Positions 5,169 through 57,293 are shown, numbered from the stretch's first letter. The stretch: 64,000 nucleotides of DNA from Lepidodermella squamata (GCA_047495785.1 JBLDXI010000030.1:248001-312000), one strand, 5' to 3'. Translations and numbers: made by a program. Notes: a model not told the origin generated them from the letters alone.

Positions 5169-8100
5169 TTAATTAATTCGAACAGCAAGAAAAACAATGT
5201 GAAGTGCGATACAGGCGCCCGTAGCAACGGCGGCTACCATGAAATCAAACACACGGGCGTGTTTAATTTCCTTGCGGAAAAGCCGCATCTGAGCCGGTAG
5301 CTTCGGCGAGCAAAGGCAACAAGCCACCAGGTGATAAAGCGTTATAGCCGCCGCGAAAAGTGTCATTGCCTGAACATATTCCTGGAGCAAGATTCGCTGC
5401 GATGTTTTCGGAATCACATTCATAACATCAGAGTTGGCTACAGTCAGAGTCAACATGATAGTCACAGCGAAAGCAGCTCGATCTGACAATTCAATAGGTA
5501 GGAGGAACGAAGAACAAGCGAGAAAAGATAGAACACCAACAGGTTGAATCAAATTCTTCATGTAGTAGTCAGGAATTCGAGAGACTAATACGGAAAAAGT
5601 GACAACACTTGAGTTAGACCCTTTGAATTTGCTCAGCCCGACCGTGACAGAAGTGTTGAGTCTGCGAAATTCACTCGTAACTTCTTCATTCCAGAAAACA
5701 AAAGAAGCGTCATCGAGGAATTTTGCAACAGGCAGTGATCGAACGAGTGCGAATGAGAAGTAGCAAGTTTGTTGGTCGAAAGGGAAGTTCCGCAGGTCCA
5801 GAGAGCATCTTGAGGTGTAGTAGCCTTCTCGAGACATGTAAAACTCGAAAACATGGTTATGCTTGTCCCCATTTCGCCTCACCACGGTTATGTCATCGTC
5901 GAAACCGTCTCCACTCGAAAAGCCACTTGTCACCCCATTTATGAAGCGCATTTTCGGGGTCCAAACTTCATCTGCGGTAGCTACGAAGACCCTTTCATCA
6001 GCACGTTCGTCCAAAACACTTACAGAGTCCTTAGGGCAGGTATCAACGTTCCAAATCAATAGCAAAATGCCGTAGGCCTGAGCAGTTTGATCGACGTTGT
6101 TGATCGAAGTTAGAGCCGTGATTTGAAAGGCGATTTTAACCTCGTTACTTGCGTTGTTATTCGGTGGGGCCGCGCGATATGCTGCGAAATCGTCGCATTC
6201 ATTGTCGATGAAGTCTTTGATTTTGAAGTCGGAGTCGGCTGTTTCTTTCGGCAGAGGCGGGATGAGAGAATCTAACCCAGTCACAGGCGCGGTCGTTCCT
6301 TTCGGAATATTCATAACCGGCGCCGTCGTGGCTTTTGTATCAGCGTTACTTGGCGATGAGGGCGTCGACTCGTCAGTGGCGGCATTGTATGATTGGGGAT
6401 CAGATGAGCCTACAACTGAAGCAGCTGTAGATCCCGCAACACTTGCAAGATTAGATTTAGAGCTTATCGTCGCTGCATTTTGAATGGTAGATGCAATTCT
6501 AGGGGCTACAGTTTGTGATGAAGCTGCGCTCGCTGCTTTTCCGCTAGTTGTTGCTGTAGGTGCTGCGGCTGTTGCGGCTTTTGTTGTAGTTGTCGTTGTA
6601 GTTGGTTTTGAAGTTGTTGTGGGTTTCGGCAGTTCGAAATACCTGAATGAAACGAATCCTGGCCCGTTGTTTGCGGTACTGTCGACCTTTGTTCCCAAGC
6701 TACCTCCCATCCCGAATCGCATCATCAAGTCAGGGCTTTGAGTCAGCGATTTTACAACTGGGTCACTTATTGGGAAGTAGGCGAGTTCCTTGTACTGGAA
6801 TTCGCCGTTCTTTGTGCCTCTGTCATTCAGCCAGAGATGGAGGTCTCCATCAATATTTTCTAGGACCAGCAAATTAGGCAACCATGAGTTGCCGATAGCC
6901 CATTTATTTGAGTCAGAAACTGCTCCCAAAAGTGAGTTCGTCCATTTGCTTTTATCCGTAGTCTTCGACGCGCATGCCAGTTGGACCGTCGACGATTCGG
7001 TGTCAATGATAATCGCAAAGCCTACGAAGGCTGAGAGGTCGAGGCCGAAATCTATCTCGCTATTCGCACTTGCAGCACTCGGAATGCCTCCTTCTGTCCA
7101 GAAAACAGCATAGCGACTTTGCTGAGGCCCGCGATAGTAAGCTTCGATGTGCCAATTTGTATTTGCCGGGATAGGTTTGTTCTAAGATAGATTGAAAATA
7201 ACTTTGTCAAGAGTATAACGAAGCTTGATGCCATCTTACATTCCACAGGCTGCCATATTGAAGGCGGGCTACTTGTGCGGCCTCAAATGCCACTGCCTTT
7301 GAGCCTGTAACCGTTCCTTGGCCAACCCAAGTATCTGATCGGAAAAGTTATTGAAGAAGCACAAATTTTGCTAAATCAATACTTACCCAAATTTCCCAGA
7401 TCGAATGACCGAATGCGATTATAATCGAAAGTACCTGTCCATTTCGTGTAATCACTAAATGGTTGAATAGCTACACTCCGTTTCACGTGAACAGTGGTGA
7501 GATAAATGTCGTTGTATGACCAAGAACCTGACACAAACTCGGGGCTTACGGCGGTGTTAAGGAACAGAACTCCAGCGACTGATCCGTCGAGATCATCAGA
7601 TCCCCCAGATCTGTTGACATGAATGACTATTCTATAGAAAAAATCCTTTAAAACTTACGAGTTCCCAATTTGCACGGTTGTTGGCGTATTGAAGTCGAAA
7701 TCACCCGCCGTAGTTGATTTTGGCGAAGTAGGTGTATTGTAGTCATTACAGTAAAGCATGAGCTTATCTTTAGCTTTCAGGCTGTCGTAAGAAATTACGA
7801 TGTAAAGCCACTTCTGAGAAGCAATTGTGCATTTGAATGTAGCACTACCGGACGCCTTTACGACTGTTATGGTATTTGCATAAACGTCACATTTCACATA
7901 TACATTTCCGAAAGTGAAGAGAGTTCCGGACTTCCCCGCAGTCGCTGGAGCGTAATAAAATGCCAATGTCCAGCTGTTAGCGTAATTACCATTCATGATC
8001 CCTGTTTCGAGGTAACTGCCGTCGGCGTTGTTGATCGAGAATGAAGTTTTCAATTGGTCTAGAGGCCCCTTGAGGCCTGCCATTAGAGTTGATTTCCCAC

Positions 8101-8464
8101 GCACTTGAAGGTCACTTTTACCCGCGTAGTCAGATAGATACATTTCTGCAGTCAACGGCCAGAATCCGATGAGAGGAGCAGCGTCCAATTTAAACGTGGT
8201 TGAGCCACACGTGTCGAAAGTAGCCGGAGACCACGCGGCAGCCGCGCAGCTGTAGGCTCTAGCCAAGCCATTATTACACGTTCCGCGAAACCAAGATCCA
8301 GATGCTATCTTTGCCCCTGCCGTGCATGGAATAATGGCTGGTGCTGTAGCTGCCGCGGCGATTGTTTCGCACTTTACGAAGGTGTTACTAGGAAGCGCGC
8401 AGTCGCAGTTAACAGATCCCTTCAGGCACCCAAAGATTACGAAAATTATACAGATTCGCTTCAT
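5169..8464 (-). CDS. Cys-loop pLGIC subunit ('LGIC-B', about 1045 aa) fused to a sushi-like / LamG-like / L-type-lectin-like / mucin ectodomain
   Basis: Exons 8464-7659, 7610-7387, 7334-7240 and 7181-5169 join in frame (3138 nt) via GT-AG introns of 48, 52 and 58 nt. Signal peptide MKRICIIFVIFGCLKGSVNC; LamG-type start LIGFWPL; WTPK; Cys-loop C-SLDLRNFPFDQQT-C; RIPDYY; M1 with Pro; M2 SDRAAFAVTIMLTLTV. Confidence 0.88.
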
Positions 8465-8838
8465 TTTCAGCAGCTGGAGTAAACAATTAGAATAGTCGAA
8501 GCCTTCCAGCTATTCGCGAGTTCATTTAATTCCAGGGGTTTTCGTCGAATTTAATATAACCTTTCCGTTTACAGATCCGTCGACCGAGACGAAGAGCAAA
8601 CATTAAAAAATACCCATGCAACTTTGAGCCCCGTGCCTTTGTAGTTTTTATTATTTTATCTGCAATTTCAAGCTCTAAAATTTACTGCATCGTATTTACT
8701 CAATTCGTAGTTGCAACACGCTTACAGGATATTAACTGAGAGCAAGTCAGGCCTGGGATTTTCTCCGATTTAAGAGATGAGAGTAAACACATTTATTCGA
8801 AAAACCTTCGCGAACATCAACGCGAAATAGTATTGCCA

Positions 8839-19404: not shown

Positions 19405-19523
19405 AATGTCCTGCTTGAATGCAGTGGTTCGATTTACTGGTAGCAAATCTAGCAGATCCAGATCAGTAGATGTGACTAGCACGGTTAGATGCTACTGTGA
19501 TGAGTAACGTGGACATAATTCAT
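19405..19523 (-). pseudogene. Truncated, frameshifted 5' remnant of the class C GPCR
   Basis: CCTGCTTGAATGCAGTGGTTCGATTTA..CAAATCTAGC matches GPCR exon 1 at about 11390-11500; the rest of the gene is absent and the frame is broken. Confidence 0.75.
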
Positions 19524-23635: not shown

Positions 23636-24761
23636 ACTTGCGCTCAACGTCATGATGTCGGGTCAAATTTCAAATGACTAATGCCACCCGAATAAATCTT
23701 AATTAAATCTTGAACCGATGCTTAACAAGTTTGATGTGAACTCGTGCTATTTATCTGTCAGTTTTAACAAATTGTAAAAACGGGAGCCCAAGGAGCCCCT
23801 GGCTATTCGAGAAGATTGAAATCGTACTCAATGCAAATTCGACCTTCAATCAGATTTTTCGGTGACATTAAAGCTAGTTTTGGATTTATTCTGTGGTTAT
23901 TTTGATTTTTTTTACTCTGGAGTCTGGAGTACTGGAGTCACACTGTTACACTGTACAATTGTTACCTACAAATGCACCCGTACACGCAGAAATGGTTCGA
24001 ATTCTAAGCGCGCCACAATTTCGAGCTTCCATTACTACAATTGCTAAAAGTGCAATTTCAATGACAATTGCTTTTTAAATTTTGATCAAGTGAACGCGAA
24101 TTGGCTGAAAGTTTGTTTTTAAACAAGTTTTTAAACAATGCTAAACAAGTCCGGCATCCGGCTGTCCTTTCTCGAGCTGAAATTTCCTGATGATTTGTCA
24201 CGGCATTGCGATATAATGGTTACTGATAGGCGTCAAGCTTTCAAAATCACTTGGCTTCAGTTTTTTGTTATGCATTTTGAAAGTACTTTCACCAAAGGAT
24301 GATAAGATACTTCCCGATTTTTATCGATATCTATCGCAAATATCCGTTATGCTATGTTATTTATTTCTTATGCCTGGACTACTATATAATTAATGAAACA
24401 TGGTTGATTTGGAGCGGCGGCATTGGAGCTCCGTACCGTCGGTTCAAAATCAAGTTCGTACCAAATCCTCCGAGTCTACTCTGATTAAAAGTAAATAGAT
24501 TATTATTCGTGAAGCCGGATATTCTCTCTCTGATTTTCAAAATTTCCTGATTTTTCTGAATTACTGCGGTGGCTTGTGCGCATAACGTCACGCCAGATCG
24601 ACAACAGAAATTAGGACCCGCGAGCTAGGCAAAACTCGTCAATTCACTCCCCTATAGTTTTTCCGGGTTTTTCTATTGCGCTATAAGCTGGATTGAGAAT
24701 GAGCGGTTTCCAAGATTGTCTGATTACCCTCTTTTATGAAAATAGGCCTTTCAGCTCCTTG

Positions 24762-27700: not shown

Positions 27701-27766
27701 ATAACTGCGTCGATTCTATTCACCATTGTGTCGACAATTCTGAGCGCAGGAATTCAAACTTCTTGA
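24762..27766 (+). CDS. Array gene G1 (most divergent): 2 sushi-like, LamG-like, L-lectin-like, mucin, SEA, GPI-type tail
   Basis: Signal peptide MIIKEITILLITAHQSLA; 6 exons with about 50-60-nt introns; LAALYPL; KHYRRGAATITEDGLSIRLA..QGAVWS; DWRIEF; S/T stalk; SEA motif ITSFRKGSIIADYIV; hydrophobic C-terminus without cytoplasmic tail. Confidence 0.8.
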
Positions 27767-28002: not shown

Positions 28003-31000
28003 ATGTTGGCAACGGTGACGGCAGCTTTTTTCACTAGCCTAGTGCTAGTTACTCGTGCCACGGAAGTTTGCGTTTGGAATGGTACGCAATCAGGCGGTAT
28101 TGACGTCTATTATACGACACCCAGCTTCGGATACTGGTTGGGTATTCAACCGAACAGTGATATGAGCCTTCCAGTTGGGTCTTCGCTGAGGGCTATGTGC
28201 CCAACACCCCAAGGAATACAATATACCACATCCAGATGTCTCGGCAACTCGTTTTGGTCCAATTCGATAACTGCTTGCTCTAGTGTCTGTAAGTTGATCG
28301 TTCCTTTAGGCATACTTATCCTAATTGCCTGAAAATCATAACAGTGTCGTTTGAGGCTCAGTGTCAGTGGGCATCTCGTGGCACAACCACGCACTCGTAT
28401 TATTCGTCAAACGACTTTGAACAATCATGGGCGTGGCTAAGTGCGGACGGAAACGCGGTACTCTCAAATTTTCTTGCTGTTCGTGATACCTGCTCATCTG
28501 GAGCTTATCAAATATTGACGTGTATCAATGGCAATTTCGTGCCAGATCCGTCGGTGTTCGATTGTGGAGAACCTTATCCGGGCATCCGGGCGAATCTCAT
28601 CGGGTTTTGGCCTTTGAATAACAACACGAAGTTCAGGGCTGTCACCGCTTCGCCTCCTTTCACGCCCAACAGCGATATCAACCCAACAAGCGTCGGCGAT
28701 TTTGGCAATTTGGTTTACACCCTGGGCATGAATAATGCCCCATTTCTTAGTACGCAGATGACACCAACAATCACCTGGCCATCCTGGACTATTTCGATTC
28801 TAGCAATGGGGACATACCAAGGAGAAATGATCAGCGTTATGCAAAATAGCCGCACCTATACATTCTCCGTCTACATTGGTTATGCTTTCATACGATTTTC
28901 AAATGACAATTATTACAGATTCGACTACGCTGATTTCGGAAATGATTATGACTTGGTTTTATTCATGTTCGGAGTGAATGGTAGCGAAGTGACTGTGACC
29001 ACCACCGGTGCATTTTCCTACACTGGTTCAAAGCCGCTGATAGTAGGTGAAACAGGGGAAATCTCGGCAGAAGTTACGCAAGTAGATATCGGAAAACAGT
29101 GAGAATATATATGAATTAGGCTATGTTCAGGAGTATAATGTTGCAAATTTAGTTCTTCTCAAACCGGAGCGTTTTCGTGCTTCACGATATGGAATGCGCA
29201 TTATTTCGACTCGAATACAGCTAACCTCCTCTATAAGCACTGCTACTCAGGTTCGATAGTTAATAGGCAGAGTTTCCTGGTTAAATTTCCATTCTTCCAG
29301 CTGCAAGTCCGCCGGGTAATCCAAGTTCCTGCCCATTGTGCAACTGGATGTACGATGAAGATCTGTCGATTCATGTTGGCAACTACGGTAGGCGAAACAA
29401 AATATACATGTTTGAAAATATTTGAACCTTTCGACTGATAACGATAGATAAACTTTACCGCCGAGGAGCGGCAGTTGTTGCAGAGAACGGTCTCAGCTTG
29501 CGTCTAGCATACTCCCTACAAACAGGCTGTGTTTGGTCTCCAAAGGTTTGTTCCAACCAATAATAGGGTGTAAGATTTGGAATCATTTTGTTTGAAGACG
29601 CTCACCGCTGATATCGATTGGCGCGCCGAGTTTTTTATTGATTTCGACCCGCTAAAAGTGGATCTGGACTTTTACTTTGTTTCGTCGGTAAATTTGAATC
29701 AGGGAGATGTCGAAGCGGCTGGTATTAATGTTGACCTCACCGCGTTTGTTGGCATGGTTTTCCGTCGAACTTCGTCCGGGACCCACTACCTGTATCTATC
29801 CTCAACGCCGAAAGCCCTGAATGCGATTAGTTCTGTCACGACTGATAATGGTTGCAACAGTCCAACCGCAATCATTTTAGAGAAAACTGGGCCAAATTTG
29901 GCATTTTATTGCCGCATTTCAACACGGGTTGACTATGTGAATCAATATAATATTTACGATTTCACCTTGGCAAATGGTTTAATACACTATGGAGTTTGTG
30001 CTTCAAACTTGGCCAATCCATCTATTTCGAAATCGGTGACTTACCTGAGCCAAGTGAAATTTTTCAGTACTTCGCTATTGACAACGACTACTACCACTAC
30101 TTCTACAACTACAACTACGACAACGCCGGAGACAACAAGCACTGAAGTGCCGAGCACTTCGACAACCACTACAACATTTACCACATCTGGAGCGACTTCA
30201 ACAACTGCGGGGCCAAGTACCACTTCAGTTACAAGCCTGAGGAGTACTACAACGGAGACACCTGCTACCATAGCAGCCACAGCACAGACCACAAATAAAC
30301 CTTCTTTGACTTCGACTACGGCTGCAACAACCGCCATCGTCACTCAAACAACGTCTAATAACGCAAATCCCATCTCTACTCGAGTTACAGGACCAATAAG
30401 CACTGCTAAGGAAGCATCCACAACAATAACAATTGCTACACCATCATCAGCCTATGTCTCAGCTACCACCAAAAAGCTTACTGTGACAACTGAAGCTTCT
30501 TCGACTCTTCAGTCAACAGCAAAGTCCACAGGCTCTAAAGGCATGAATAGCCTATCATCCAGCGCCGCTGAATCATCGACCTCTACAGCACTGCCAACCT
30601 CATCGACAAAGATCGTTCCTAATACCACTAGCCGACCAGCAGGAAGCTCGAGCCAGTCAACTTTCACACCACGCCAACACAAAGAAGCACTATTTATTCT
30701 GCGCCTGTTTACGAGGTCAGCATGAACTTTAAAATCGAGGGCGATAACATTACAATACCCTCAAGCGGAATTAACGTGACTACAGACCCTTGGGATCCCA
30801 ACCTTAACAAATCGAGTTCGCCCGTTTTCGTAGCTTTAGCTGATTTCATGCTGCCTGTGGCGTGGCAACTAGCAAATCAAACAGCGGCGATGATGGACAA
30901 TGCTCAGGTTGAGTACGTAAACATCACAGGGTTCAGGAAGGGCAGTATCATCTCTGATTACATTGTTGCGTTGAGAAGTTTGACGCAGCTTACTGAAAAC

Positions 31001-31261
31001 GAGATTGCCGTCAAAGTTGCCGCTGCTGCTGCGAAAATCAAAGATACGATCGTCGGCAAGCTAGCGAATGGGCTGAATGTCTCTCGACTGGGTCAAATAT
31101 CCGTGCAGAAAGTTGCTGGATCTGGGAAAACCCTTTCATTATCCGTCACTCCCAAACCTATGCCACCAGCGGCGAATTCTAGATCTAATGCACTGGTGTG
31201 TTCTTTCTATGGTTTACTATCGGTTCTGATCATTGGAAAGCTGATCTACTTCGAGATGTGA
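28003..31261 (+). pseudogene. Array gene G2, frameshift at the end of the mucin stalk (~30660-30680)
   Basis: Same 6-exon layout. ORF 29577..30725 leaves the family frame just before APVYEVSMNF; SEA/GPI continues in another frame (30722..31261). Could be an assembly indel or give a secreted truncated product. Confidence 0.65.
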
Positions 31262-31691: not shown

Positions 31692-34562
31692 ATGATAGTA
31701 GCCCAAGCGACTTTGTTGCTGAGTTGCCTATGTTCAGTCTCACGCGCCGTGGAGTTATGCACATGGAATGCTTCGTCATATATATCAACTGACGTTTCCT
31801 TCACCTTGAGCGAACCAGCTGTAGCCGGTAAATTTATTGATTTTTCAGCTGGACAGGATTCACAACTACCGATTCGGACAATCTTGAGCGCCAAGTGTTT
31901 AAGCAACGGCGTGGATACGTCAACAAGATGCCTCAATGGTGGCGTTTGGTCTCAATCTTTTTCAGCATGTTCTTCGTGTGCAGATTCTTCATGTGCAAAT
32001 TTCAGTAGGTTCAACTACTTTTCTTCGAATACTATTCATTAAGCTGTTATCCTATGTATCACAGAGTCGCCTGTTGGCCCCTGCCAGTGGCAAGCTGCAG
32101 ACTGGGCCGGGCACACCTATTACTCTTCCAGTGATAATGAAGCGTCATGGGTGCCAGTAGGTCGCATAGAAAATAAGGTTTTCGATAAGTTCACTGTCGT
32201 CAGAGATACCTGCCAATCGGGTGCTTATAAAGTAACGGCATGTATGAATGGAAATTTCGTGCCTAGTCTATCTGACTTCGATTGTGGGGAACCTTCTTCG
32301 AGCATCCGGTCGAAACTTGTCGGGTTTTGGCCGTTGAATAACAATACGCAATTGAGGTCTATCACTAATTCGCCCCCATTCACGCCAAGCAATGATAATT
32401 TAGTGCCATCAGGCAAAGGCAATTTCGGCGACTTGGTTTACACCCTAGGCGGCGGTTGCGCCCCATATCTTAGTGTCGACATTACACCGGAGGTCGCCTT
32501 GCCGTCTTGGACAATGTCGATTCTCGCGGTGGCAAATTATCAAGGAGAATTGATCCAGTTCACGCAAGGCACCACTAGTTTCAAATTCTCAGTAGCTGTC
32601 ACGGCTGTGACTGTGCGTACAGCAGCTTATAACTACACCTTTAGTTATGGCGCGTTCGGATATGAGCCGAGATGGTTGCTATACATGTTCGGTTTCAACG
32701 GGAAAACGCTTACGTTAACAACTGCTGGAGAGTTTTCCACATCTTTAACCGCAGACCTGGCTGCTGGGGACACAGGAGCAATTCAGAATTCCCCCGTATT
32801 GCAAATAAAGCTTGGAAAGGAGTAAGTTTCTAAAATATGTTCGCTATTACCCTTAAATCTGAGACTTGCCTAAAATCAGGGCGACAAGTTGTGCTCCTAT
32901 GTCTTGCTTTGCAATATTCAATGCGCATTACTCAGACCAGAATACAGCGAAACTCCTCTACCAACACTGCGTCGCAGGTATATAGAAATCAAAGTCAAAT
33001 CAAGTCGAAATGCTAAACCATTTTAATAGCTTTAACACCACCGACAGTGCCGAGTCAGTCTTGCATGTCATGTGACTGGAAATACGATGAGAAATTGTCT
33101 ATGCACGTAGCTAACTACGGTAAAGTTTATCTATGTCAATAGAGCCGTCACGCGTCATTTCAACTCCACCAATTATAGACAAACTTTACCGTCGGGGAGC
33201 TGCATTAATTACAGAGAATAGCTTGAGTTTGCGCCTAGCTGCAACAAAGGAGCAAGGTTGCGTTTGGTCTCCAGAAGTTCGTCTTTAATTAAGTTGGATA
33301 TTAGCAATTTTCGCAAATTTTTTCAGCGATTTTCAGCAAGTGCCATGGACTGGCGAGCAGAATTCTTTCTCGACTACGACCTATCTCAAGTAGATCTGGA
33401 CCTGTACTTCATCCCAGAAACTCCTACGCTGAATTTAGCTGTTGGTAATGTCGAGACGCAGGGCATTAATTTCGATGCCAGTGCATTCGCTGGGATGATT
33501 TTCCGTCGCGCAGCCTCTGGGAATTACGAACTGTATGAATCATCTTCACCGCAGAGCTTCAGTGCTTTGAGTGCGTCGTACTCATATAAATACACCTGCT
33601 CGCCCGTTGCATTGATCTTCGAGAAGGTCGGATCGAATTTAGGATTTTTTTGCCGAACGGACTACGACATTTCGCGTATCGCAAATTTTGACATCCCCCA
33701 TTTCTTCGCAACTAGCGGCAACATTCGCTATGGAGTTTGCGCAAAAAGCAACGGTGCATCCAGCTCATTAGCGAAAGCAAATGCTTATCTGAGCCAGGTG
33801 AAATTTTTTACCGGATTGCAGAAGGTGACAACTACTACAGCTCCTGAAATAGCAAGTAGTTCACCTGCTATTTCGGATAAATCCACCACATCTACTCTTG
33901 CAACTGATGTAAAGAATTCGCAATCAAGTGCTACATCTCAGGCCATATCAATTTCGCCTAGCTATTCTGAGGCTTGGACATCGACGAAGCAGGCAGATGC
34001 CTTGTCCATTCATGAGGTCAGCATGAATTTGAAAATCTTTGGGGACAATATCACCATACCCTCGAAAGGTATCAATGTGACTACAGACCCTTGGGATTCA
34101 AATCTAGACAACTCGAGTTCACCTACTTTCATAGCCTTGGCTGAGTTTATGCTACCCACCTTGTGGCAATTGGCGAATGAAACAGCTGCGATGATGAATA
34201 ACACTCAGGTGGAGTCCGTCAAAATCACTGGGTTCAGAAAGGGCAGTATCATCTCTGATTACATCGTCGCATTAAGAAGTTTGACGCAACTGACAGAAAG
34301 CGAGATTGCCATCAAAGTAGCTGCTGCGGTAGCAAAGATAAAAGAAAGTGTCATCAAGAAACTAGCGAATGGGCTTGATACTGCTAGACTGGGCCAAGTT
34401 ACTGTCGTGAAGACTACTGAACCAGTGAAAACACCAGTAGCATCTGTGACTCCCAATCCAATGTCGCCTGCGGCAAAATCTAGGTCTACTGCTTTGACTT
34501 ATTCTCTCTATTGTTTGAAGTCAGCTCTGATAATTGGAAAACTCATTTTCATCCAAGCCTGA
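31692..34562 (+). CDS. Array gene G3, apparently intact: sushi-like x2 / LamG-like / L-lectin-like / mucin / SEA / GPI-type tail
   Basis: Exons 31692-32004, 32065-32821, 32880-32977, 33030-33119, 33179-33276 and 33327-34562 join in frame; LVGFWPLN, DWRAEFF, ITGFRKGSIISDYIV. Confidence 0.85.
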
Positions 34563-35380: not shown

Positions 35381-35460
35381 TGATAGATTATGGTTGTTAA
35401 ACATCAGCCATCCAGCATTCAATGCACTTCTCACTTTGTGTAACTTTTTCACTGAACAAA

Positions 35461-37375
35461 ATGATAGGATTTCAAGCGTCTTTGGCGCTAGGTTGCCTAT
35501 GCTTGGTCTCACATGCAGCGGAGATATGCATTTGGAATGCTACTACAACTAATGACTTCTCGCTCAATTTCGCCACATCCGGGAGCGGCTGGACAAATCT
35601 CTCACCGCGAGAAACTACGCAACTTCTCCTTAGAACAATGTTATCAGCTACGTGCACCGACGGCACCAGCCGTGAAACTTCATCAATATGCCTGGATGGC
35701 GGCATTTGGTCTCATTCAATCTCAGGATGCGCTAGTTTCAGTAGGTCCAAATTCTAGAAAGCCTTTTCTCATGCATATAATCAAAAATGTTCAACAGCGT
35801 CATTTGCTTCCAGCTGCAGTCTCCAGAAGTTTGTTCAAAATTAGGAAGAGAAAGCTACTTCATTTTTCACGGACTTTTTTCTAGCCATTTCCAGCTTCCA
35901 TTAATTGGCGTGCAGAGTTCTTTCTCGACCTTGACGTCGATAAAGTGGATGTGGATCTATACTTCATTTCAGAAACCCCCACGCTGAATTTAACAACAGG
36001 CAATATTGAAGCCCCGGGAATCAATATCGATATGAACGCCTTTGCCGGGATGCTTATTCGTCGCGCCAATACAGGCTCTTACTTTCTGTATGAGTCTTCA
36101 ACGCCGATGATACTGGGTCAGCTAGCGGCGTCATATTCATCCTCCTACAGCAGCTGCTCGCCTACTACAGCAATGATTTTCGAAAGAACGGGGTCGAATG
36201 TAGCATTTTTCTGTCGAGTAAATTCGGATGTGACTTATGTTACAACCTTCAGCGTTCCGACTTTCGACGCAACAAGTGGTAATTTACGCTATGGCGTTTG
36301 TGCTAGAAGCAGCAGCAATGCATACAGCTCAATGGCGAAAGCAAATAGTTATCTGAGCCAAGTGTACTTCTTCACCAAAGCCCTCGCAACAACAACTGTC
36401 ACAACTTCTACGAGTACTACTACAACACCTACGACCACGACGTCTGGGGCACCAAGTACTTCGACTACGGCAGCAGCTATTACCGCCACTCAAACTCAAT
36501 CGAAATCAGTCACTACCCGTGAAATTACAATTTCAGCTGGTTCATCGACAGTTGGATCGAAGGTTCAGCCTCCAAAAGCGGCTAATCCTACCGCAGCTCC
36601 CGCAGCGCAAACTCCCGCAGCTGGGAATTCTGCGAATTCGATCATTTCGAGCGCATCACCAGTGATTGTACAATCAACAGACGCTAAACCCGCAGCTGTT
36701 TCTCCCACAAATCCATCAGGGAAGACTGTAACTCAGAGCATTACAAATTTGCCCACCTCACCGAAGGCTTCGACTCTATCATCGACGAAAGTTCCCGTTA
36801 CCCCTGTTTATGAGGTGATCATGAACTTTAAAATCGAGGGCGATAACATTACGATACCCTCAAGCGGAATCGACGTGACTACAGACCCTTGGGATCCCAA
36901 CCTTAACAAATCGAGTTCGCTCGTTTTCGTAGCTTTAGCTGACTTCATGCTACCTGTGGCGTGGCAACTAGCAAATCAAACAGTTGCGATTATGGACAAT
37001 GCTCAGGTTGAGTCCGTCAATATCACAGGGTTCAGAAAGGGCAGTATCATTTCCGACTACATTGTTGCATTGAGAAGCTTGACGCAACTGACCGAGAGCG
37101 AGATTGCCGCCAAAGTTGCCGCTGCTGCTGCGAAAATCAAAGATACGATCGTCAGCAAACTAGCGAATGGGCTGAATGTCTCTCGACTAGGTCAAGTATC
37201 CGTGCAGAAAGTGGCTGGCCCTGTAAAATCATCTGTTACTTCACCTAAGCCTGTTGAAGCCGCAGGAAACGCAAGCTCATCGACTGTTCTTGCATACAAT
37301 GTCTCTTTGTTAATCTCAGCTTTGATCATAGGAGGGCTAATCTGCCTTGCTATGTATAAAAACCAAGGGCAATAA
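35461..37375 (+). pseudogene. Array gene G4 with a ~1.1-kb internal deletion (second sushi-like and LamG-like domains lost)
   Basis: The start of exon 2 (CGTCATTTGCTTCCAGCTGC) is fused to the end of exon 5 (GTCTCCAGAA|GT) at about 35818; normal splicing gives a frameshift. Exon 1 and the last exon are intact and closest to G5. Confidence 0.7.
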
Positions 37376-38158: not shown

Positions 38159-41149
38159 ATGATAGGATTCCAAACGACTCTATCGCTAGGTTTCCTATGC
38201 CTGGTCTCACATGCAGCGGAGATATGCATTTGGAATGCTACTACAACTTATGACTTCTCGCTCAGCTTTGCTTTACCAGGGAATGGCTGGACAAATCTCC
38301 CGCCACGCGAAACTACGCAGCTTCTCGTTGGAACACTCTTATCCGCCACGTGTTCCGACAGCGGTAAAGAAATGTCCTCAATATGCCTTAATGGCGGTAT
38401 TTGGTCTCATTCAATCCCAGGATGCGCTAGTTTCAGTAGGTTCAAATGAAAGTCATTTCACCTGAATATTATCGTAAATACCACAGCGTCGTCTGTTTCC
38501 AACTGCCAATGGGGACTTGCTGACCAGGCTGCGCACAACTATTACTATTCTAATAGTAATCAGGCTTCATGGACGCCACTAAGCCCCGTTTACCATAACG
38601 TTTTCCAGAAGTACAGTATCGTCAGAGACATCTGCCAATCTGGTGCATATCAGTTATCGACATGTATCAATGGCAATTTTGTTCCGGATCCGTCAGGGTT
38701 TGATTGTGGCGAACCTGTTCAGGGCATCCGGTCGAAGCTTATCGGGTACTGGCCGTTGAATGGCAATACTAAGATGAACGCTCTTACCCAGTCCCCATCA
38801 TTCACTGCCAATACCCTAATTTACCCATCGGGCTCAGGGTTTTACACTCTGGGTGGCCTCTGTTCTGCGTATGTTAGCGTGTACGTTACACCAGCTTTAA
38901 CCGGGCAATCTTGGACCATGTCTATCCTAACAGCAGGGAGTTATAGAGGGCAACTGATTCGACTAAGACAAGGGAGTATTACTTACGAGTTTGCAATGAA
39001 CTCGAATGCTGTTTCCGTTACTATGGGCGTTACCTACGAATTCGCTAGCTCTATTTTCGGATCGAGCCCGAATCAGTTGTTATTGATGTTCAGCTGTAAC
39101 GAAACAACTTTGACTTTGACTACTGCTGGTGCGCTTTCCTCAACTACCAACGTCAACTTGGTTAACAGGGGACAAATTCAGAATATACAAACATTTATAG
39201 AAATTGGAAATCAGTAAGTTGATCGCATGAATTCAAGCCCTCAAATTTAAATGAACCCTAATTCAGGGGGGCAACCTGTGGGCCTTTGTCGTGTTTCACA
39301 ATGTGGGATGCGTATTTCGCAGACCAGAATACAGCGAATCTTCTCTACCAACACTGTATCGGAGGTATGGTTGGTCAAAGTCAAACTTTGAGTCAAATTA
39401 TTTGAGTTCTTAACAGCTGCAACACCACCGAATGTTCCAAGTCAAGCTTGCACATCGTGCGACTGGCAATACAACGAAAAGCTATCGATCCACCTAGCCA
39501 ATTACGGTATAGCATAGATTTAGACCTATTGCATAGTTCTACTTCGCTAACCATAGATAAACTCTACCGTCGAGGTGCTGCTGTGATTACAGAGAACGGA
39601 ATGAGCTTGCGCCTAGCTGCACTACGCGAACAAGGCTGTGTTTGGTCTCCTGAAGTTTGTTCAGAATTTAAATGAAAACGGGAAATTATTTGCCTATTTT
39701 TCTAAAGCCATTTTCAACCACCATGGATTGGCGGGCAGAATTCTTTATTGACTTTGACGTCAATAATGTAAATGTGGACCTCTATTTCATAGCGGAAAGC
39801 CCCACGCTGAATTTGACCACGGGCAATTTAGAGGCCGCGGGAATCAATGTCGATGTAACTGCATTTGCTGGGTTGCTTCTTCGTCGCGTTTCGACGGCTA
39901 TTACTACGTGTATCAATCTGCAACGCCGGCGATATTGAGTGGGATATCGGAGTCATATGGATCCTTCTACAGCTGCTCGCCTACTACAGCAATGATATTT
40001 GAAAAGGTCGGATCGAATTTGGCATTTTTCTGTCGAGTGGATTCGGATATTACCTCGATTACTAATTTTTACGTTTCTCGCTTCACCGGAACAAGTGGCA
40101 ACATACGCTATGGAATTTGTGCCAAAAACGGCAATGGTTACAACTCAGTGGCAAAAGCAAACACTTATCTGAACCAAGTGAAATTCTTCACCACACCTCT
40201 CTCCACGACGACTATCACCACTTCTACAAGTACAACTACTATAACACCTACGGCGACAACGTCTGGTGCACCAAGTACTTCAACTGCGGCAGCGGCTATT
40301 ACCACCACTCAGAGTGAATCACAATCAGTCACCGCCTATGATCCAACAGCAGCTCCCACAGCTCAAACTACATCGGAATCGTTTACTACCCGTGAGAATT
40401 CTGCGAATACGATAATTTCGAGCAGTTCATCTTCGATGGTTCAATCGACAGACAGAATATCCACGCCCGCTGCTGTTGCAAAACCATCAGGAATGACCGT
40501 AACGCAGGACATTTCAAATTCGCCCACCTCTCCGAAAGTTTCGACTCTATTATCGACGAAGCAAGCGACTATTCAATTTGCGCCTGTTTACGAGATCAGC
40601 ATGAATTTTAAAATCGAGGGCGATAATATCACCATACCATCAAGCGGAATCAACGTGACTACGGAACCATGGGATCCCAGCCTTAACAAGTCGAATTCAC
40701 CCGTTTTCGTCGCTTTAACTCAGTTTATGCTGCCTGTAGCATGGCAACTAGCAAATCAAACTGCTTCAATGATGGATGATGCTCAGGTCGAGTTCGTTAA
40801 CATCACAGGGTTCAGGAAGGGAAGTATCATCTCGGATTACATTGTAGCATTGAGGAGTTTGACACAACTAACTGAAAACGAGATTGCTGCCAAAGTGGCA
40901 GCTGCTGCTGCAAAGATTAAGGAAACGATCGTCGGCAAACTAGCGAATGGGCTGGATCTTTCTCGACTTGGACAAATATCCGTGCAGAAGGTGGCTGGAC
41001 CTGTGAAAGATCCGATCGCATCTGTTACTCCGTCAAAGCCTGTTAAACCTGCAGCAAATGCAAGATCGACTGCTCTTGTATATGATTTCTCTTTGTTGAT
41101 CTCAGCATTGATCATGGGAGGGCTCATCTGCTTTAAACTGCGACATTGA
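38159..41149 (+). pseudogene. Array gene G5, single-base frameshift at ~39896
   Basis: Full 6-exon layout; the frame switches between ORFs 39672..39938 and 39908..41149 at TCGACGGCTATTAC (one base short). May be a sequencing/assembly error. Confidence 0.6.
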
Positions 41150-41639
41150 GTTGTGAAACTAACTCTCCCTATTTGTTCTGACTTTATTTCCGCCAATTAT
41201 ACTGGCTTGAAATGTAATCTACCAACGTGACTCTTGTGATTCCTTGCGTTGATTGAAGCATTTATCCTGACTGAATACATAAGGAGGGCGAAGTGTTAGG
41301 TTACATATTGCCACATGGCTATTAGCTTATCCAACGCAGTGGACTAGTCTGAAGAATAAACCGAAATGCCCGTAACTGTTGATTTTCAAAAATATTATCA
41401 CTGTTAATGGATGAAGTAACCGAAATTTTCTTCAATTTTCTCACGAAGCAGATGATCATCAAAATTATACGACTTGCGAATTGCGCAATATGGAAAACTC
41501 TGGAAAATCTTACTCTCCAAGGCATACGGTAAATTTATTTGCAGATTATAACCAGAAGCTAACAAATTGTTTTTCAAAAAGTAGGCAACAGACATATTCA
41601 AAATTCTCCCCATTTCGTGTGAATTCATCGCCTAAAAGA

Positions 41640-44303
41640 ATGTTAGGAATCTCAGCGGGTTTTTTGCTTAGTTGCTTGTGGCTGGTCTCGCACGCCGTGG
41701 AGCTATGCCCTTGGAATGCTACTTCAACTAATGACATCACTACTCGCTTCTTTTCATTTAAAACTGGCAGTTGGATGATGTTGTCGGCAGATGTTGCGTC
41801 GGCTTATCCGGTTCGGACTACAATAAAAGGTTATTGTCCGGGAGGCACTCCCGAAACTTCAACAAGGTGCCTCAATGGCGGTGTTTGGTCTCATTCATTC
41901 TCCGGATGCGCAAGCATCAGTAAGTCTTAATAACTCTCCAAAGCCTTGATTTAAAAGAAAAAATTATCCAGCCACGACTATAAACAGTTGCAAATGGTTA
42001 GCAACATACCAGGCATCACATGCCTATCATGTGTCCAGAGACAATGAAGCGACATGGCAGCAAATAAATGTCACCCAAAATCAGAATTTCGAAAACTACG
42101 ATCTGATAAGAGACACCTGCCCGTCCGGGGCTTATCATGTCGCCTCTTGTATCAATGGTCAATTTTTTCCCCAACCATCATCGTTCGATTGCGGAGAACC
42201 TTTTTCGGGCATACGCTCGAAACTCGTCGGGTTTTGGCCGTTGAATAACAACACGCAGCTGAGGTCTATCACTTCATCACCCCCATTCACGCCTAGCAAT
42301 GATAATATCACGCCACAAGCCAGTGGCAACTTTGGAAATTTGGTTTACAACCTAGGTGGCGGTTGCGCGCCATATCTTAGCATGGATTTTACACCGGAGA
42401 CCGCTTGGCGATCTTGGACAATGTCCATTCTCGCTATAGGATCTTTTAAAGGAGAATTGATCCAGTTCACGCAAGGCAGTACTAGTTATAAGTTCTCAGT
42501 CAGCCTCTCGACTGTCACTGTGCGTACAGCCAGTTATAGCTATACCTTTAGTAATGGCGGGTTCGGATATCAAACGGCATGGGTGTTATACATGTTCGGA
42601 TTCGAAGGGACAACTTTTACGTTAATGACTGCTGGAGCGTTTTCCGCTTCTTTCACCGCGAACATGGCTGCAGGCGACACTGGAGCTATTCAGAATATGG
42701 CCTCAGTGATATACATCGGGAAAGAGTGAGTTTCCTGGCTATCTCCCTGCAACATTTATGATTTGAGATTATCATAAAATCAGGTCTACAAGTTGCGCGA
42801 CTTTGTCGTGTTTCGCAATGTTCAATGCGCATTACTCGGACGCAAATTCAGCGGATGTTTTGTACAAACACTGCGTCGCAGGTATGATGAGTCCAAAGTA
42901 CAACTTTGTCAAAATGTTGAACGATTTCTTGCAGCTGCCTCACCACCGACAGTGCCGAGCCAATCTTGCACGTCATGTGACTGGAAGTATGATGAAAAAT
43001 TGTCCATGCATATAGGCAATTATGGTAAAGCAAATGTAACTGAATGCCGAAAAACTTCAATTTCGCTAACGATAGATAAACTCTACCGCCGAGGGGCTGC
43101 CGTAATAACGGAGAACGGAATGAGAATACGCCTAGCCTCGACAAATGAGAAGGGCTGTGTTTGGTCTCCAGAAGTTCGTTAAAAATTTGGAAAAAATTGC
43201 TTTATTTTCATTCAATTTATCCTCAAGTCATTTCCGGCTACAATAGATTGGCGGGCAGAGTTCTTCGTTGAGTATGACCTGCCTAGTGTAGAACTGCAGC
43301 TGTAATTCATTCCAGAGACCCCAGCGCTGAATTTGACTAGTGGTGATATCGCTTCGATGGGAATGAATGTCAACAACGGCACCTTTGCCGGGATGCTTTT
43401 TCAGTGCGTCGAAAACGCGAAATGTTTCCTGTATCAGTCTTCAACGCCGATTAAAATGACGGCTTTAGTTCCATCAAATAGGGGAAGTTACGACTGTTCA
43501 ACCTCTGCATTGATTTTTCAAAAATTCGGATCGAAGTTGTCATTTTATTGTCGAACAGAAACGGAAATCACCCCAATGGTAAATTTTGACATTCCCGAAT
43601 TCGTTGCAACGAGTGGTAACATACGATATGGAGTTTGCGCTGAAAACAAAAATGCATACTCCACAGTGGCGAAAGCTATGACGTATCTGACCCAAGTGAA
43701 ATTCTTCACCTCCTCGTCGCAAATTGCGACCACTTCGTCTAGTACCACAACAACAGACGTACCAAGTACTTCGACTAGTTCACCTGCTAATACGAATCCA
43801 ACAACATCCAAATCTGTGTCCACGAGCGAAATGACGGAGAACATGTCCATTTCAACAAGTTTAAGTTCAATACCGAAGATGCAATCGACTGAGGGCGTCA
43901 TTCCGCTCTCGACGAAGCAACCTCTTATTCTTGTTAACGAGATCAGCATGAATTTGAAAGTCTTTGGGGACAATATCGCCATACCCTCGAAAGGTATCAA
44001 TGTGACTACAGACCCTTGGGATTCAAATCTAGACAACTCGAGTTCACCGACTTTCATAGCCTTGGCTGAATTCATGCTGCCTTGTGGCAATTGGCGAATG
44101 AAACTGCTGCGCTGATGGATAACACTCAGGTCGAGTCCGTCAAAATCACTGGCTTCAGGAAGGGAAGCATCATCTCTGACTACATTGTAGCTCTGAGAAG
44201 TTTGACGCAATTGACTGAAAGCGAGATTGCAATCAAAGTAGCTGCTGCGGTAGCGAAAATTAAAGATAGTGTCATCAAGAAATATAAAAATAAAGATATA
44301 TAA
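41640..44303 (+). pseudogene. Array gene G6: nonsense codon, frameshift and loss of the GPI tail
   Basis: TAA at 43303-43305 where G7 has TAC; about 4-nt deletion at 44081; SEA C-terminus replaced by AT-rich filler from 44281. Confidence 0.85.
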
Positions 44304-45140: not shown

Positions 45141-45884
45141 TATGAAGGTTTATAGTTTATACTTGATCTTACATGGCAATATACAAAATAGTGTGAGCGC
45201 CAAGGGCGGCACTCATGTAACGGCTGCGAAAACAACTACTCTTCGAAGTCACCGCTACCAAATCGCCGAGTACAAAAACTACTACAAAGACCACTGGGAA
45301 AGCTACGAATACTACAACGCCTGCGACCACTACAAGTACAGGTCCAGGGAAGACCAGTGTTACTACGGCTTCTTCGGATAAAACTAGTAAGCCTTTGGCC
45401 AGCTAGTTCTACTACGGCACCTACTATCACTACGACAACTACATCTGAGTCCTTCACCAGCTATGCAAATACAGTAAATCCGTCAATATCGACTGGATCA
45501 TCGACATTTGAGTCAACATTTTTCAGTCAATCTACTCAAAGTACACTCGAATCCTTTACCACCCAAGAAACTAGTAGTTTTGCGTCGAATTCATCGACAT
45601 TGGAATCGGTTGATCAGTTTTCAACAACTTTCGATTCGACAACTACTGATCTCTTAACTCAAACCAACTCTTCCACCGCAAGTGAATCTGATTCGACTAC
45701 TAACATTTCGACTGGGCCGTCGACATCGGGATCGACAGACCGGCCATCAACAGCTGACGATGCCGCTGCAGTTACAATAGAACAAGCTACATCAGAATCG
45801 ATTATTACAAGTGGGAGTACTGAGTATTCGCTTCTCTCGAACGGCTCATCAACATCGGTTCAATCCACAGCTGAGGCAATATAA
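45141..45884 (+). pseudogene. Degraded, truncated copy of the mucin-SEA gene at 60894
   Basis: GGCAATATACAAAATAGTGTGAGCGCCAAGGGCGG and the S/T stalk match 60948-61756; start region deleted, frameshifted, SEA missing. Upstream 44938-45130 matches 60615-60800. Confidence 0.85.
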
Positions 45885-45948
45885 TGAATCTAAAACAAAA
45901 GATAAGACTATGATGCGATGGCGACGGACAAAAACAGATATATGCTGG

Positions 45949-46198
45949 CAGGGTGCGATCTTCGATCCCCGAGCTCCCGGGGATGGAAAAAATTTCTTTG
46001 CTGTTTTTGCCAAAATGTCGAGTCATTTCGGCTAATAACCGAGCGAAGCGAGAAAATTTTGAAGATTTTCCACTAAAGCACGCCCCAGAAACCTTCCAAA
46101 ATTAACAAAACAGTGGGATAAATTCTCATTTTGTCGTCTGGCCCGGCCGAGCTGGGGGGGGGATGATCCCCCCATCCCCCCCTGAAAGTCGCACACTG
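45949..46198. mobile_element. hAT-like MITE (250 bp)
   Basis: TIRs CAGGGTGCGA / TCGCACACTG; perfect 8-bp TSD TATGCTGG at 45941-45948 and 46199-46206. Confidence 0.85.
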
Positions 46199-47136: not shown

Positions 47137-49986
47137 ATGTTACGAATCTCAGCGACATTTTTACTTAGTTGCCTATGTTTGGTCTCGCGAGCCGTGGAGC
47201 TATGCTCTTGGAATGCTACTTCGACAAATGATGTCAATATCCGGTACTTTTCATTGAAAACTGGCAGTTGGGCGACATTGTGGCCGGATGTTCCGTCAAT
47301 TTATCCGGTTCGGACAACAATAAAAGGTTCCTGTGTCTTAGGATCTACTGAAACTTCAGCAAGGTGCCTTAATGGCGGTGTTTGGTCTCATTCATTCTCC
47401 GGATGCGCAAGTATCAGTAAGTCTTAATGTCGAAATAACTTTCGGAATCTATGATTTGATAAAAAAATACAGCTACGCCTATAGGCAACTGCAAATGGTT
47501 AGCAGCAGACCAGGCCGCTCACGTCTATCATGTGTCTAGAGATAATGAAGCGACATGGCAGGAAATAAATGTTATCCAAAATCAGACTTTCGACAATTAC
47601 GCTCTGATTAGAGACACCTGTCAGTCTGGGGCTTATCAAGTCTCGGCTTGTATCAATGGCCAATTTTTCCCTCAACCATCATCGTTCGATTGCGGAGAGC
47701 CTCATCAAGGCATCCGGTCGAAACTCATCGGCTTTTGGCCGTTGAATAACAACACGAAGCTGAGGGCTATCACTCAATCCCCCCCATTCACGCCAAGCAA
47801 TGGTACTATCGAGCCATTTGGTTTACAACCTAGGCGGTGGTTGCGCGCCATATCTTAGCATGGACATTACACCGGAGACCGCGTGGCCATCTTGGACAAT
47901 GTCGATTGTTGCTATGGGATCTTACAAAGGAGAATTGATTCAGTTCACTCAAGGCAAAACTAAATACGTGTTTTCAGTTGGCATTTCGAAAGTTACAGTG
48001 CGCACTGCAGATTATAGCTACACTTTTAGCCATGGTTCGTTCGGATATCAAACAACATGGGTGTTATACATGTTCGGGGTCAACGGCGGAACATTTACCC
48101 TAATGACTGCTGGAGCGTTTTCCGCATCTTTCACCGCTAACATGGCTGCAGGCGACACTGGAGCAATTCAGAGCATGCCCTCGGCAATATACATTGGGAA
48201 GGAGTGAGTTTCTGGGCTATTTTACCACAGCATTTTGACTTGAGATTTAAAACAAATCAGGGCGACAAGTTGCGGGCCTGTGTCGTGTTTCACAATGTTC
48301 AATGCGCATTACTCGGACGCGAATACGGCATATTTTTTGTACAACCACTGTATGGCAGGTATGAAGAGTTCGAAGTCCAACTTTTATCAAAGCTCTGAGC
48401 GATTTCTTACAGCTGCAACACCGCCGACTGTGCCGAACAAAGCTTGCACGTCATGTGACTGGATTTACGACGAAAGTTTGTCCATGCATATGGCTAATTA
48501 TGGTAAGCGTATATAAATAACTCACGAACAACTTCAATTCTGCTAACGATAGATAAACTCTACCGCCGAGGAGCTGCCGTAATCACGGAGAACGGACTGA
48601 GTTTGCGCCTAGCTTCGACAAATGAGAAAGGCTGTGTTTGGTCTTCAGAAGTTTGTTCAAAATTAGAAAGAAAATTACTTAATGTTCGCTTGTTGTTTTA
48701 TCCTTAAGTCATTTCCGGATCCAATAGATTGGCGGGCAGAGTTCTTCATTGAGTATGACCTACCTAGTGTAGAACTGCAGCTGTACTTCATCCCGGAGAC
48801 TCCAGCACTGAATTTGAGCAGAGGCGATATCGAGTCGATGGGAATAAATGTCAACAACGGCACCTTTGCCGGGATGCTTTTTCAATGCGTCGAAAACGCG
48901 AAATGTTTCCTGTATCAGTCTTCAACACCGATAAAAATGAGTGCTTTAGTTCCATCAAACAAGGGAACCTACGACTGTTCGACCTCTGCTCTTATTTTTC
49001 AAAAAATCGGATCGACGTTATCATTATTTTGCCGAACAGAATCGGCTATCAACCTGATGGATAATTTTGACATTCCTGAATTCGTCGCAACTAGGGGTAA
49101 CATGCGCTACGGAGTTTGTGCTATAAACAAGAATGGCTACAGCACAGTCTCGAAAGCTATGACGTATCTGAGTCAAGTAAAATTCTTTACCTCATCGCAA
49201 ATTGTCACCACTTCAACAAGTACCACAGCAACAACTAGTACTTCTACTAGTACAGCTGCTTATCCAACTCAAGCAACATCTAAATCTGTGTCTAACAGTG
49301 CAATGACTGTGAATATGTCGATTTCGGCAAGTTCATCACCGACGATTCAATCGACTCGGGGCGTATCAAGTTCGCTGACCTCTCCGAAAGGATCGACAAT
49401 ATATCCACCGACACCACCTCTTATTCTGGTTAACGAGGTCAGAATGAATTTGAAAATCGAGGGCGACAACATCGCCATACCCTCGAAAGGTATCAATGTA
49501 ACTACAGACCCTTGGGATGCCAGCCTCAACAACCCAAATTCACCAACTTTCATGGCTTTAGCTGAGTTCATGCTCCCTGCGGTCTGGCAACTGGCAAATG
49601 AAACTGCTGCGATGATGGATAACACTCAGGTCGAGTCCGTCAAAATCACTGGCTTCAGGAAGGGAAGCATCATCTCTGACTACATTGTAGCTCTGAGAAG
49701 TTTGACGCAATTGACTGAAAGCGAGATTGCAATCAAAGTAGCTGCTGCGGTTGCGAAGATTAAAGACAGCGTCATCAAGAAACTAGCGAACGGTCTTGAT
49801 ACTTCTCGACTGGGCCAAGTCTCTGTCGTTAAGGCTACTGAACCTGATGTGAAAAACCCTGTCGCATCCGTGTCTCCCCCTAAAACCGATAATATGCCGG
49901 CGGCGAAATCTAGATCGACTACTTTGGCGTACCCTACATCTTATCTTGTCTCGATGCTAATTTTTGGAAAACAGTTTATAATATAA
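47137..49986 (+). pseudogene. Array gene G7, 23-nt frameshifting deletion at ~47817
   Basis: Closest paralogue of G6; lacks CAAGCCAGTGGCAACTTTGGAAA present in G6, splitting ORFs 47532..47858 and 47800..48207. The remaining exons are open. Confidence 0.75.

Positions 49987-57260: not shown

Positions 57261-57293
<33 letters not shown>

Follow-up and report, generated by a model that had tools for sequence, protein, structure and literature searches.

Accessory N-terminal domains are a feature of some bacterial pLGICs (pentameric ligand-gated ion channels), and eukaryotic subunits are described without them (PMC12664993). One such channel is DeCLIC, a prokaryotic pLGIC with two N-terminal jelly-roll lobes (Hu et al. 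2020, as cited in PMC12664993); it lacks a Cys-loop, has almost no intracellular domain, and has its lobes packed straight onto the extracellular domain, where they modulate gating. Here we describe LGIC-B, a predicted gene in a 64,000-nucleotide (nt) stretch of the genome of Lepidodermella squamata (GCA_047495785.1 JBLDXI010000030.1:248001-312000; hereafter the window, with positions counted from its first letter). As in DeCLIC, the predicted product is a pLGIC subunit preceded by two lobes, here putative jelly-rolls, and with almost no intracellular domain. Unlike DeCLIC, LGIC-B is a eukaryotic gene with spliceosomal introns, and its two lobes (D1 and D2, together with a Cys-rich module the head) are of putative LamG and L-lectin type and sit on a mucin-like stalk of ~230 residues. 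We found no sequence relation between the heads of LGIC-B and DeCLIC.

Two further groups of proteins bear on this locus. LGIC-B shares the window with seven related genes, G1-G7, members of a larger family that we refer to as the array. Their predicted proteins resemble MUC1-type mucins in having a Ser/Thr-rich stalk and a membrane-proximal SEA domain, within which the motif F-R-x-G-S-(I/V)-(I/V) resembles the MUC1 self-cleavage site. They differ from MUC1 in their Cys-rich/LamG/lectin-like head and in a short hydrophobic tail, likely a glycosylphosphatidylinositol (GPI) signal, in place of a transmembrane helix and cytoplasmic tail. The second group comprises Laminin_G_3-stalk-pLGIC genes on contig C3 of the same genome and metagenome proteins P0006, P0007, P0012, and P0013, which share with LGIC-B its channel clade (at 40-42% and 28-39% identity, respectively) and the succession of head, Thr-rich stalk, and channel. 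The heads of these fusions consist of one Laminin_G_3 domain or several, encoded within one exon, and have no counterpart of D2, of the Cys-rich module, or of the three LGIC-B introns. In our literature search, no paper on eukaryotic Cys-loop subunits bearing lectin or LamG heads turned up; such fusions exist, unannotated, in metagenomes and, in large numbers, in this genome. What is new in LGIC-B is that the channel family and the SEA-mucin family are linked in one gene.

Results

LGIC-B is predicted to encode a Cys-loop channel subunit with a stalked head

LGIC-B is modeled as a minus-strand gene of four exons (Table 1) with a predicted product of 1045 residues, which from its translation we read as a Cys-loop pLGIC subunit fused to a stalked, two-module lectin-like head. 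The three introns (48, 52, and 58 nt) are all GT-AG and lie in phases 2, 1, and 0, with exon 1 ending after Q-I-G-N and exon 2 after D-L-G-N-L. Exon 4 is a single open frame of 670 codons that runs from D2 through the Thr-rich stalk into the channel, and the junction between head and channel is therefore independent of splicing; all that splicing adds is the signal peptide and the initial one and a half domains of the head. Within exon 4 itself there is neither a usable start nor a signal peptide.

The channel module matches Neur_chan_LBD (PF02931) with an E value of 5.3e-11 (42.8 bits, cut-off 26). Its match to Neur_chan_memb (E = 5e-5, 24.2 bits) lies under the cut-off of 28.1, which paralogs ~40% identical to it do reach, and four hydrophobic segments are visible in the module. 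The exon 4 translation contains the Cys-loop C-S-L-D-L-R-N-F-P-F-D-Q-Q-T-C, a C-x13-C arrangement with an F-P-F-D core, and the loop between M3 and M4 is very short (~20 residues). An Asp at position -1' of M2, in the motif S-D-R-A-A-F, suggests that the channel is cation selective.

The LGIC-B head matches the heads of neighboring SEA-mucin genes

The seven plus-strand array genes lie across 24.7-50 kb of the window and share a common layout. Exon 1 encodes a signal peptide and a Cys-rich module, and exon 2 a second Cys-rich module and a LamG-like domain; three small exons follow, and a large last exon supplies the remainder of the second domain, a Thr-rich stalk, a SEA-like module, and a hydrophobic C-terminus. 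The original prediction, made from the sequence of the window, held that LGIC-B aligns with these genes motif by motif, and the motifs it quoted (LIGFWPL, SWTLA, DLGNL|D, QYGSLWN, NWHIE, LDLSAFVG, and the rest) are all present and collinear with the array genes.

In the significance tests of this likeness, LGIC-B was left out of every profile used. Exon 1 matches array LamG exons at 2e-5 in tblastn, and the spliced head aligns with G1 over 355 collinear residues in blastp. A profile of G1-G3 aligns significantly with the LGIC-B head over 369 collinear columns (hhalign E = 1.6e-7), and with a hidden Markov model (HMM) built from three LamG exons of the array, exon 1 of LGIC-B scores E = 6e-8 among 600 open reading frames (ORFs). 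Taking the two domains separately, a 39-gene array profile matches D1 with an hhalign P value of 7e-10, and a 32-gene profile of concatenated exons E3-E6 matches D2 with P = 8e-5; the D2 score of 38.0 compares with 14.9 +/- 2.9 in 200 shuffles (maximum 28.5), none of which scored as well. An E value of 6e-60 on LGIC-B from an HMM of the last-exon D2 part was discarded as circular, since LGIC-B had been included in that model. On these sequence comparisons we regard homology between LGIC-B and the array as firm for D1. The alignments support a homologous cassette common to both, in which a putative LamG-type jellyroll precedes a jellyroll of L-lectin/galectin-like type, and, as had been proposed, one type of head with two different ends: a channel in LGIC-B, and in the array a SEA module with a hydrophobic tail.

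The intron pattern of the head is shared with the array

Intron 1 of LGIC-B (phase 2, after I-G-N) is an exact match of the array intron after (I/L)-G-(K/N), and intron 2 (phase 1, after G-N-L and before D) of the array intron after G/A-N-Y/L/F and before D/N, with the exon 2 junction motif aligning exactly with the array motif H-V-G/A-N-Y|D. Intron 3, after W-N, and the array intron after W-S-x-x are both in phase 0 and equally spaced from the next conserved Trp, but lie two codons apart. The original claim that all three introns share array position and phase is hence exact for introns 1 and 2 and holds for the phase of intron 3, but not for its position. The array genes have two extra introns (E1/E2 and E3/E4) that are absent from LGIC-B and present also in the array subfamily most similar to it; a search for array paralogs that had lost introns, which would have supplied a contiguous D2 reference, found none. 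By its intron pattern the LGIC-B head is array-type; the nearest channel relatives are intronless in the head.

Origin of the head and site of the join

When the LGIC-B head is used as a phmmer query, array LamG exons rank on top (3e-9 to 1e-5) and channel-family heads far lower (~0.01). Compared with the heads of the C3 channel paralogs, D1 gives an hhalign P value of 8.8e-6 over 158 columns, vs 7e-10 to array D1, and D2 shows no similarity (P = 0.76, vs 8e-5 to array D2). Rooted on the LamG domains of C3, a tree of D1 groups LGIC-B with the array with a Shimodaira-Hasegawa approximate likelihood ratio test (SH-aLRT) support of 99, as sister to all 35 sampled array genes (support 80). On the phmmer ranking, the hhalign P values, and the rooted D1 tree, we classify the LGIC-B head as array-type.

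The branch leading to LGIC-B is very long (1.7-3.8 substitutions per site), and an unrooted concatenated tree, in which it measured 3.8, was dropped for placing the gene. Either the split between LGIC-B and the array is older than the present array radiation, or LGIC-B is very fast-evolving. Identity between the heads is 11-24% (about 20%), and no close paralog of the LGIC-B head was found in the genome. The suggestion that channel and array carry the same sensor is not supported by these values: with such low identity, so long a branch, and a position as sister to all array members, a shared ligand specificity cannot be assumed.

Homology to the array stops at …F-V-S-F-R-Y-F, and homology to the channel paralogs restarts at …L-I-P-P-L-P-K-E, with only the low-complexity stalk between them. 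Because one homology ends before the stalk and the other begins after it, the Thr-rich stalk is the probable site of an ancient join.

Apparent constraint on LGIC-B and read evidence

Contigs of a second haplotype (~1.7% divergent, from a DNA run) cover LGIC-B. The 40 differences listed, out of 61, comprise 22 synonymous, 15 non-synonymous, and 3 intron-1 substitutions, and correspond to a rough pN/pS of ~0.21 per site, with a similar value for the head alone; from this ratio the whole mosaic is apparently under purifying selection. Intron 1 (48 nt) holds 4 differences in all, including the sole indel inside the gene whose length is not a multiple of three, a pattern that fits the intron calls. 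The other two indels, of 9 nt each, are in frame and both fall in the stalk.

The array genes belong to a family of SEA mucins

Tails of the array genes match Pfam SEA (PF01390) in 37 of 40 cases, with a best E value of 1.8e-9; that of G3 scores 7e-4 (20 bits), under the cut-off. F-R-K-G-S is invariant in the 40 aligned tails, with I-I next, and shedding of the proteins is plausible because the G-S of the SEA motif never varies. All end in 15-20 hydrophobic residues that terminate directly at the stop codon and are likely, from sequence, a GPI signal. The array genes had been described as SEA/GPI surface proteins, of which the SEA part is borne out and the GPI part is a prediction from the hydrophobic ends. 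We regard the array proteins as SEA-type surface mucins with a distantly related head.

A profile of the last-exon head finds 53 matches in the 121-Mb assembly, on contigs C30, C42, C50, C60, and C85. LGIC-B is the sole member of the 53 with a channel as its tail; every other recovered tail has the F-R-K-G-S-I-I… SEA module and a hydrophobic end. On its contig it has a block of array-family genes to either side. Several array genes form near-identical pairs with terminal branches <0.04, namely L017/L042, L011/L040, and L019/L043 (C30 vs C60) and L027/L033 and L028/L032 (C42 vs C50). Contig C60 may be a haplotig of C30, and C50 one of C42, and distinct array genes would for this reason number fewer than the 53 matches.

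Of the seven array genes in the window, five are broken (Table 1), which looks like birth-and-death turnover; the other two, G1 and G3, run intact from LamG exon through to stop codon. Downstream of G6 (44300-45900), unrelated sequence precedes a Thr/Ser-rich ORF of 175 residues (45357-45884) that lacks both head and tail and may be an insertion or an orphaned piece of stalk.

The channel belongs to a large family of head-stalk-pLGIC genes

The LGIC-B channel has 108 scored paralogs in the genome, out of 2167 first-look candidates. Its nearest paralogs lie between 2.80 and 2.88 Mb of C3, where single ORFs of 900-1000 residues encode two Laminin_G_3 domains, then a Thr-rich stalk and the channel. 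Their heads match PF13385 at 1e-11 to 1e-16, above the Pfam cut-off, and the same proteins match Neur_chan_LBD and Neur_chan_memb. Elsewhere in the genome, L049 (C4:1588000-1593100) and L050 (C64:473500-478600) are single ORFs of ~1640-1660 residues with several LamG-like repeats before the pLGIC domain, and open frames of 1608-1711 residues recur on C4, C46, and C64.

HMMER searches of public libraries (1.8 billion representatives) returned 2718 relatives of the LGIC-B channel at E<=0.001. Several of the metagenome relatives have 235-726 extra N-terminal residues bearing Laminin_G_3 or EGF domains, and these heads match the C3-type head HMM (to 3e-20), not array D2. Word-indexed protein searches with the D2 and channel parts of exon 4 gave null results that we did not take as absence: as the full HMMER search finds 2718 channel relatives, they reflect a limit of the index. 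Stalked N-terminal heads of Laminin_G_3 or EGF type occur both in this genome, in over 100 genes of the LGIC-B channel clade, and in metagenome proteins. The head-stalk-pLGIC layout, of which the original prediction knew no described case, is not peculiar to LGIC-B; this particular head on a channel is unique.

A second chimeric channel gene, LGIC-A, occupies 288-5020 of the window on the plus strand (ORFs 427-1056 and 3698-5020), tail-to-tail with LGIC-B and with stop codons ~150 nt apart. It has a Thr-rich/EGF-like upstream ORF and then a Thr-rich stalk in frame with Neur_chan_LBD (9.5e-16), and its channel is absent from the 108 closest paralogs of LGIC-B. Just upstream of the window, L003 (C30:238001-248000) holds two more channel genes (ORFs 722-2425 and 2530-3342; 7114-8553 and 8658-9548), each with a different beta-rich head that falls in no recognized class and is borne by a very long Ser/Thr stalk. 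Neither head is matched by the array D2 profile.

Predicted folds of the head domains

Structure models were made from exon-level pieces only. The D2 fold was computed on the last exon of array member G3, without the strands contributed by upstream exons, and is carried to LGIC-B by homology. In this model, from a 45-row alignment (predicted local distance difference test (pLDDT) 85.7, predicted template modeling score 0.81), D2 is a lectin-type beta-sandwich, which in Foldseek comes closest to ERGIC-53, VIP36, legume lectins, and carbohydrate-binding modules related to these (probability 1.0, E ~5e-3). VIA-align gives Z scores of 12-13 to galectins and 12.2 to an Entamoeba legume-lectin-like domain. 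The likeness of D2 to ERGIC-53/VIP36, legume lectins, and galectins is thus one of modeled fold but not of sequence: D2 has no Pfam match, including Lectin_leg-like and Lectin_legB, and a 45-member profile found no PDB sequence match.

The AlphaFold2 model of LGIC-B D1 is all-beta with a pLDDT of 59, and its top matches, although all ConA-like jellyrolls, are weak (Foldseek E>=0.01, Z<=8.5); they include the lectin-like subdomain of clostridial neurotoxins, neurexin LNS, pentraxin, and GH16/GH43 modules. Neither LGIC-B exon 1 nor a single one of 40 family members matches the Laminin_G_3 Pfam model with the threshold relaxed to E<=1. PDB sequence profiles and an ESM Atlas feature search with the heads gave no usable matches. 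The labels LamG and L-lectin given to the two domains are thus reasonable at the level of fold, but neither domain directly matches Pfam or PDB sequences. Fold alone is no proof of glycan binding.

Other genes in the window

A class-C-G-protein-coupled-receptor-like gene lies directly upstream of LGIC-B on the minus strand (9178-11510), with an ANF_receptor match (1.7e-13) followed by hydrophobic segments. Two plus-strand ORFs (15321-15803 and 22657-22995) share the motif …C-R-Q/L-L-G-G-A-L-A…W-F-S-G-x-S-V-W-K-W-x-D-G-x-R-F-V-W, which recalls C-type lectin domains; neither has a Pfam match at E<=0.01. At 55560-56168, a minus-strand ORF with a Ulp1/C48 peptidase domain (1.8e-5) lies beside ORFs 56184-57083 and 57291-57902, which have no family match, and this region may be part of a mobile element.

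Table 1. Positions of LGIC-B and of the array genes in the window
Feature	Position	Strand	Description
LGIC-B, whole gene	8464-5169	minus	ATG at 8464, stop codon 5171-5169
LGIC-B, exons	8464-7659, 7610-7387, 7334-7240, 7181-5172	minus	
LGIC-B exon 1	7659..8464	minus	signal peptide, Cys-rich module, most of D1 (putative LamG-type jellyroll); GT donor at 7658
LGIC-B exon 2	7387..7610	minus	final D1 strands, linker, initial D2 strands; AG 7612-7611, GT 7386-7385
LGIC-B exon 3	7240..7334	minus	D2 segment with Q-Y-G-S-L-W motif; ends in phase 0; aligns with array exon E5 (…Q-G-C-V-W-S)
LGIC-B exon 4, first part	6630..7181	minus	remaining D2, N-W-H-I-E … F-V-S-F-R-Y-F; in frame with stalk and channel
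LGIC-B exon 4, middle	6315..6629	minus	Thr/Ser/Ala/Pro-rich stalk, mucin-like by composition
LGIC-B exon 4, last part	5169..6314	minus	predicted complete Cys-loop pLGIC module: extracellular domain, putative M1-M3, ~20-residue loop, putative M4; stop codon
G1	24693..27766	plus	intact from LamG exon to stop; SEA motif F-R-K-G-S-I-I and hydrophobic end
G1, exons	E2 25091-25842, E3 25902-25999, E4 26047-26130, E5 26185-26282, E6 26336-27766	plus	
G2	28003..31261	plus	1-nt frameshift between stalk and SEA, within 30632-30722
G3	31692..34562	plus	intact from LamG exon to stop
G3, exons	E2 to 32821, E3 32880-32977, E4 33030-33119, E5 33179-33276, E6 33327-34562	plus	
G4	35422..37375	plus	deletion derivative: exon 1 straight to last exon, without LamG exon, E3-E5, and first half of D2
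G5	38159..41149	plus	1-nt deletion and frameshift in D2 near 39896
G6	41481..44300	plus	in-frame stop 43303-43305, frameshift near 44090, SEA tail truncated at ~44300
G7	47137..49986	plus	23-nt deletion in LamG exon near 47816; last exon intact

Discussion

We think it probable that LGIC-B is an intact, old mosaic in which an array-type head was joined, within the stalk, to a head-stalk-pLGIC channel, with the head probably serving as a tether. The 5' part of the gene (signal peptide, Cys-rich module, D1, D2, and three short introns) would share its ancestry with the SEA-mucin heads, while the 3' part (post-stalk linker and channel) would derive from the large, otherwise intronless head-stalk-pLGIC family, whose usual heads are Laminin_G_3 domains. 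The Thr-rich stalk, a low-complexity region common to both parent families, would be a likely substrate for illegitimate or unequal recombination. By analogy with known pLGICs, a pentamer of LGIC-B would display five heads on disordered, O-glycosylated stalks of ~230 residues. Since a disordered stalk cannot transmit a conformational change, tethering, localization, or clustering is favored over allosteric gating: the head would most likely attach the channel to an extracellular partner, localize it there, or cluster it, as a built-in auxiliary domain, and gating would stay at the canonical extracellular domain. Pulling through the tether would be a less likely alternative.

Several of our results weigh against this interpretation. 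Homology of D2 between LGIC-B and the array, judged from sequence profiles, is moderate, although in register, and a plain HMM of the last-exon D2 part built without LGIC-B scores 4.5 bits on it (P = 0.0014). D1 resembles the channel-family LamG heads as well, so part of the LGIC-B head is possibly native to the channel lineage. The basal position of LGIC-B in the D1 tree may be a long-branch attraction, and the direction of head transfer is not polarized by the present data. The estimate of purifying selection is rough, coming as it does from only part of the differences between haplotypes. Finally, the 2015 run X1 (guessed to be RNA; 11% of words; 5685-7673) yielded low-depth contigs with opposite-strand joints and no spliced joints, and the transcript joining exons 1-4 is consequently a prediction. 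The X1 contigs are short, with strand switches every 50-100 nt, and look like a library or assembly artefact.

The transfer could also have run the other way, from an ancestral LGIC-B-like channel whose head and stalk were joined to a SEA/anchor tail and so founded the array family. We consider this unlikely, but a serious contender: with the channel-family heads as root of the D1 tree, LGIC-B branches as sister to every array member, and its D1 shows more similarity to those heads than array D1 does (P = 9e-6 vs 0.004). However, the basal placement on which this scenario draws is the one open to a long-branch effect, no datum polarizes the event, and the introns would need to have been acquired ahead of the split, since other genes of the channel family have none in the head.

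With respect to function, one could imagine that this lineage turned a Cys-loop channel into a modular receptor, with recombination in the stalk swapping heads with anchored or shed mucins, so that LGIC-B would be an ionotropic or tether-gated sensor of glycans or surfaces and the relatives of its head would be competitors. This we regard as quite improbable. Still harder to sustain is the scheme originally put forward, an ionotropic glycan or pattern receptor gated by its lectin heads and paired with the array as matched GPI-anchored or shed co-receptors or decoys of the same specificity. The homologous heads with lectin-type folds, the plausibility of shedding given an invariant G-S, and the location of LGIC-B between two array blocks on one contig are all compatible with it. 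However, the heads are only 11-24% identical and their split predates the array radiation, five of the seven neighbors are defective, and ~230 residues of low-complexity stalk between head and channel argue against allosteric gating; the paired system was pure inference on the part of the original prediction. The least probable explanation of all is that there was no specific cassette transfer and that the LGIC-B head is a divergent native head of the channel family, its likeness to the array reflecting a common module ancestry: such a view presumes that LamG/lectin jellyrolls are used everywhere in the surface proteins of this genome, and can draw on the match of D1 to the Laminin_G_3 heads (P = 8.8e-6) and on an F/Y-W-P start motif common to all three groups, but D2 matches the array only, D1 is nearer to the array (phmmer 3e-9 vs 0.01) and in a clade with it at a support of 99, and the introns are shared with the array and found in the head of none of the nearest channel paralogs.

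The genome of L. squamata holds a large eukaryotic family of Cys-loop subunits whose jellyroll heads are set on stalks. Because both the intron pattern and D2 tie LGIC-B to the SEA mucins, the mucin stalk looks like an exchange point of heads and outputs. Under the favored interpretation of LGIC-B as an old mosaic, the gene documents the shuffling of domains between an ion channel and surface mucins, and shows how such channels gain outer domains. It also provides concrete constructs, with the head kept, removed, or swapped, for addressing the role of an extracellular head on a pLGIC.

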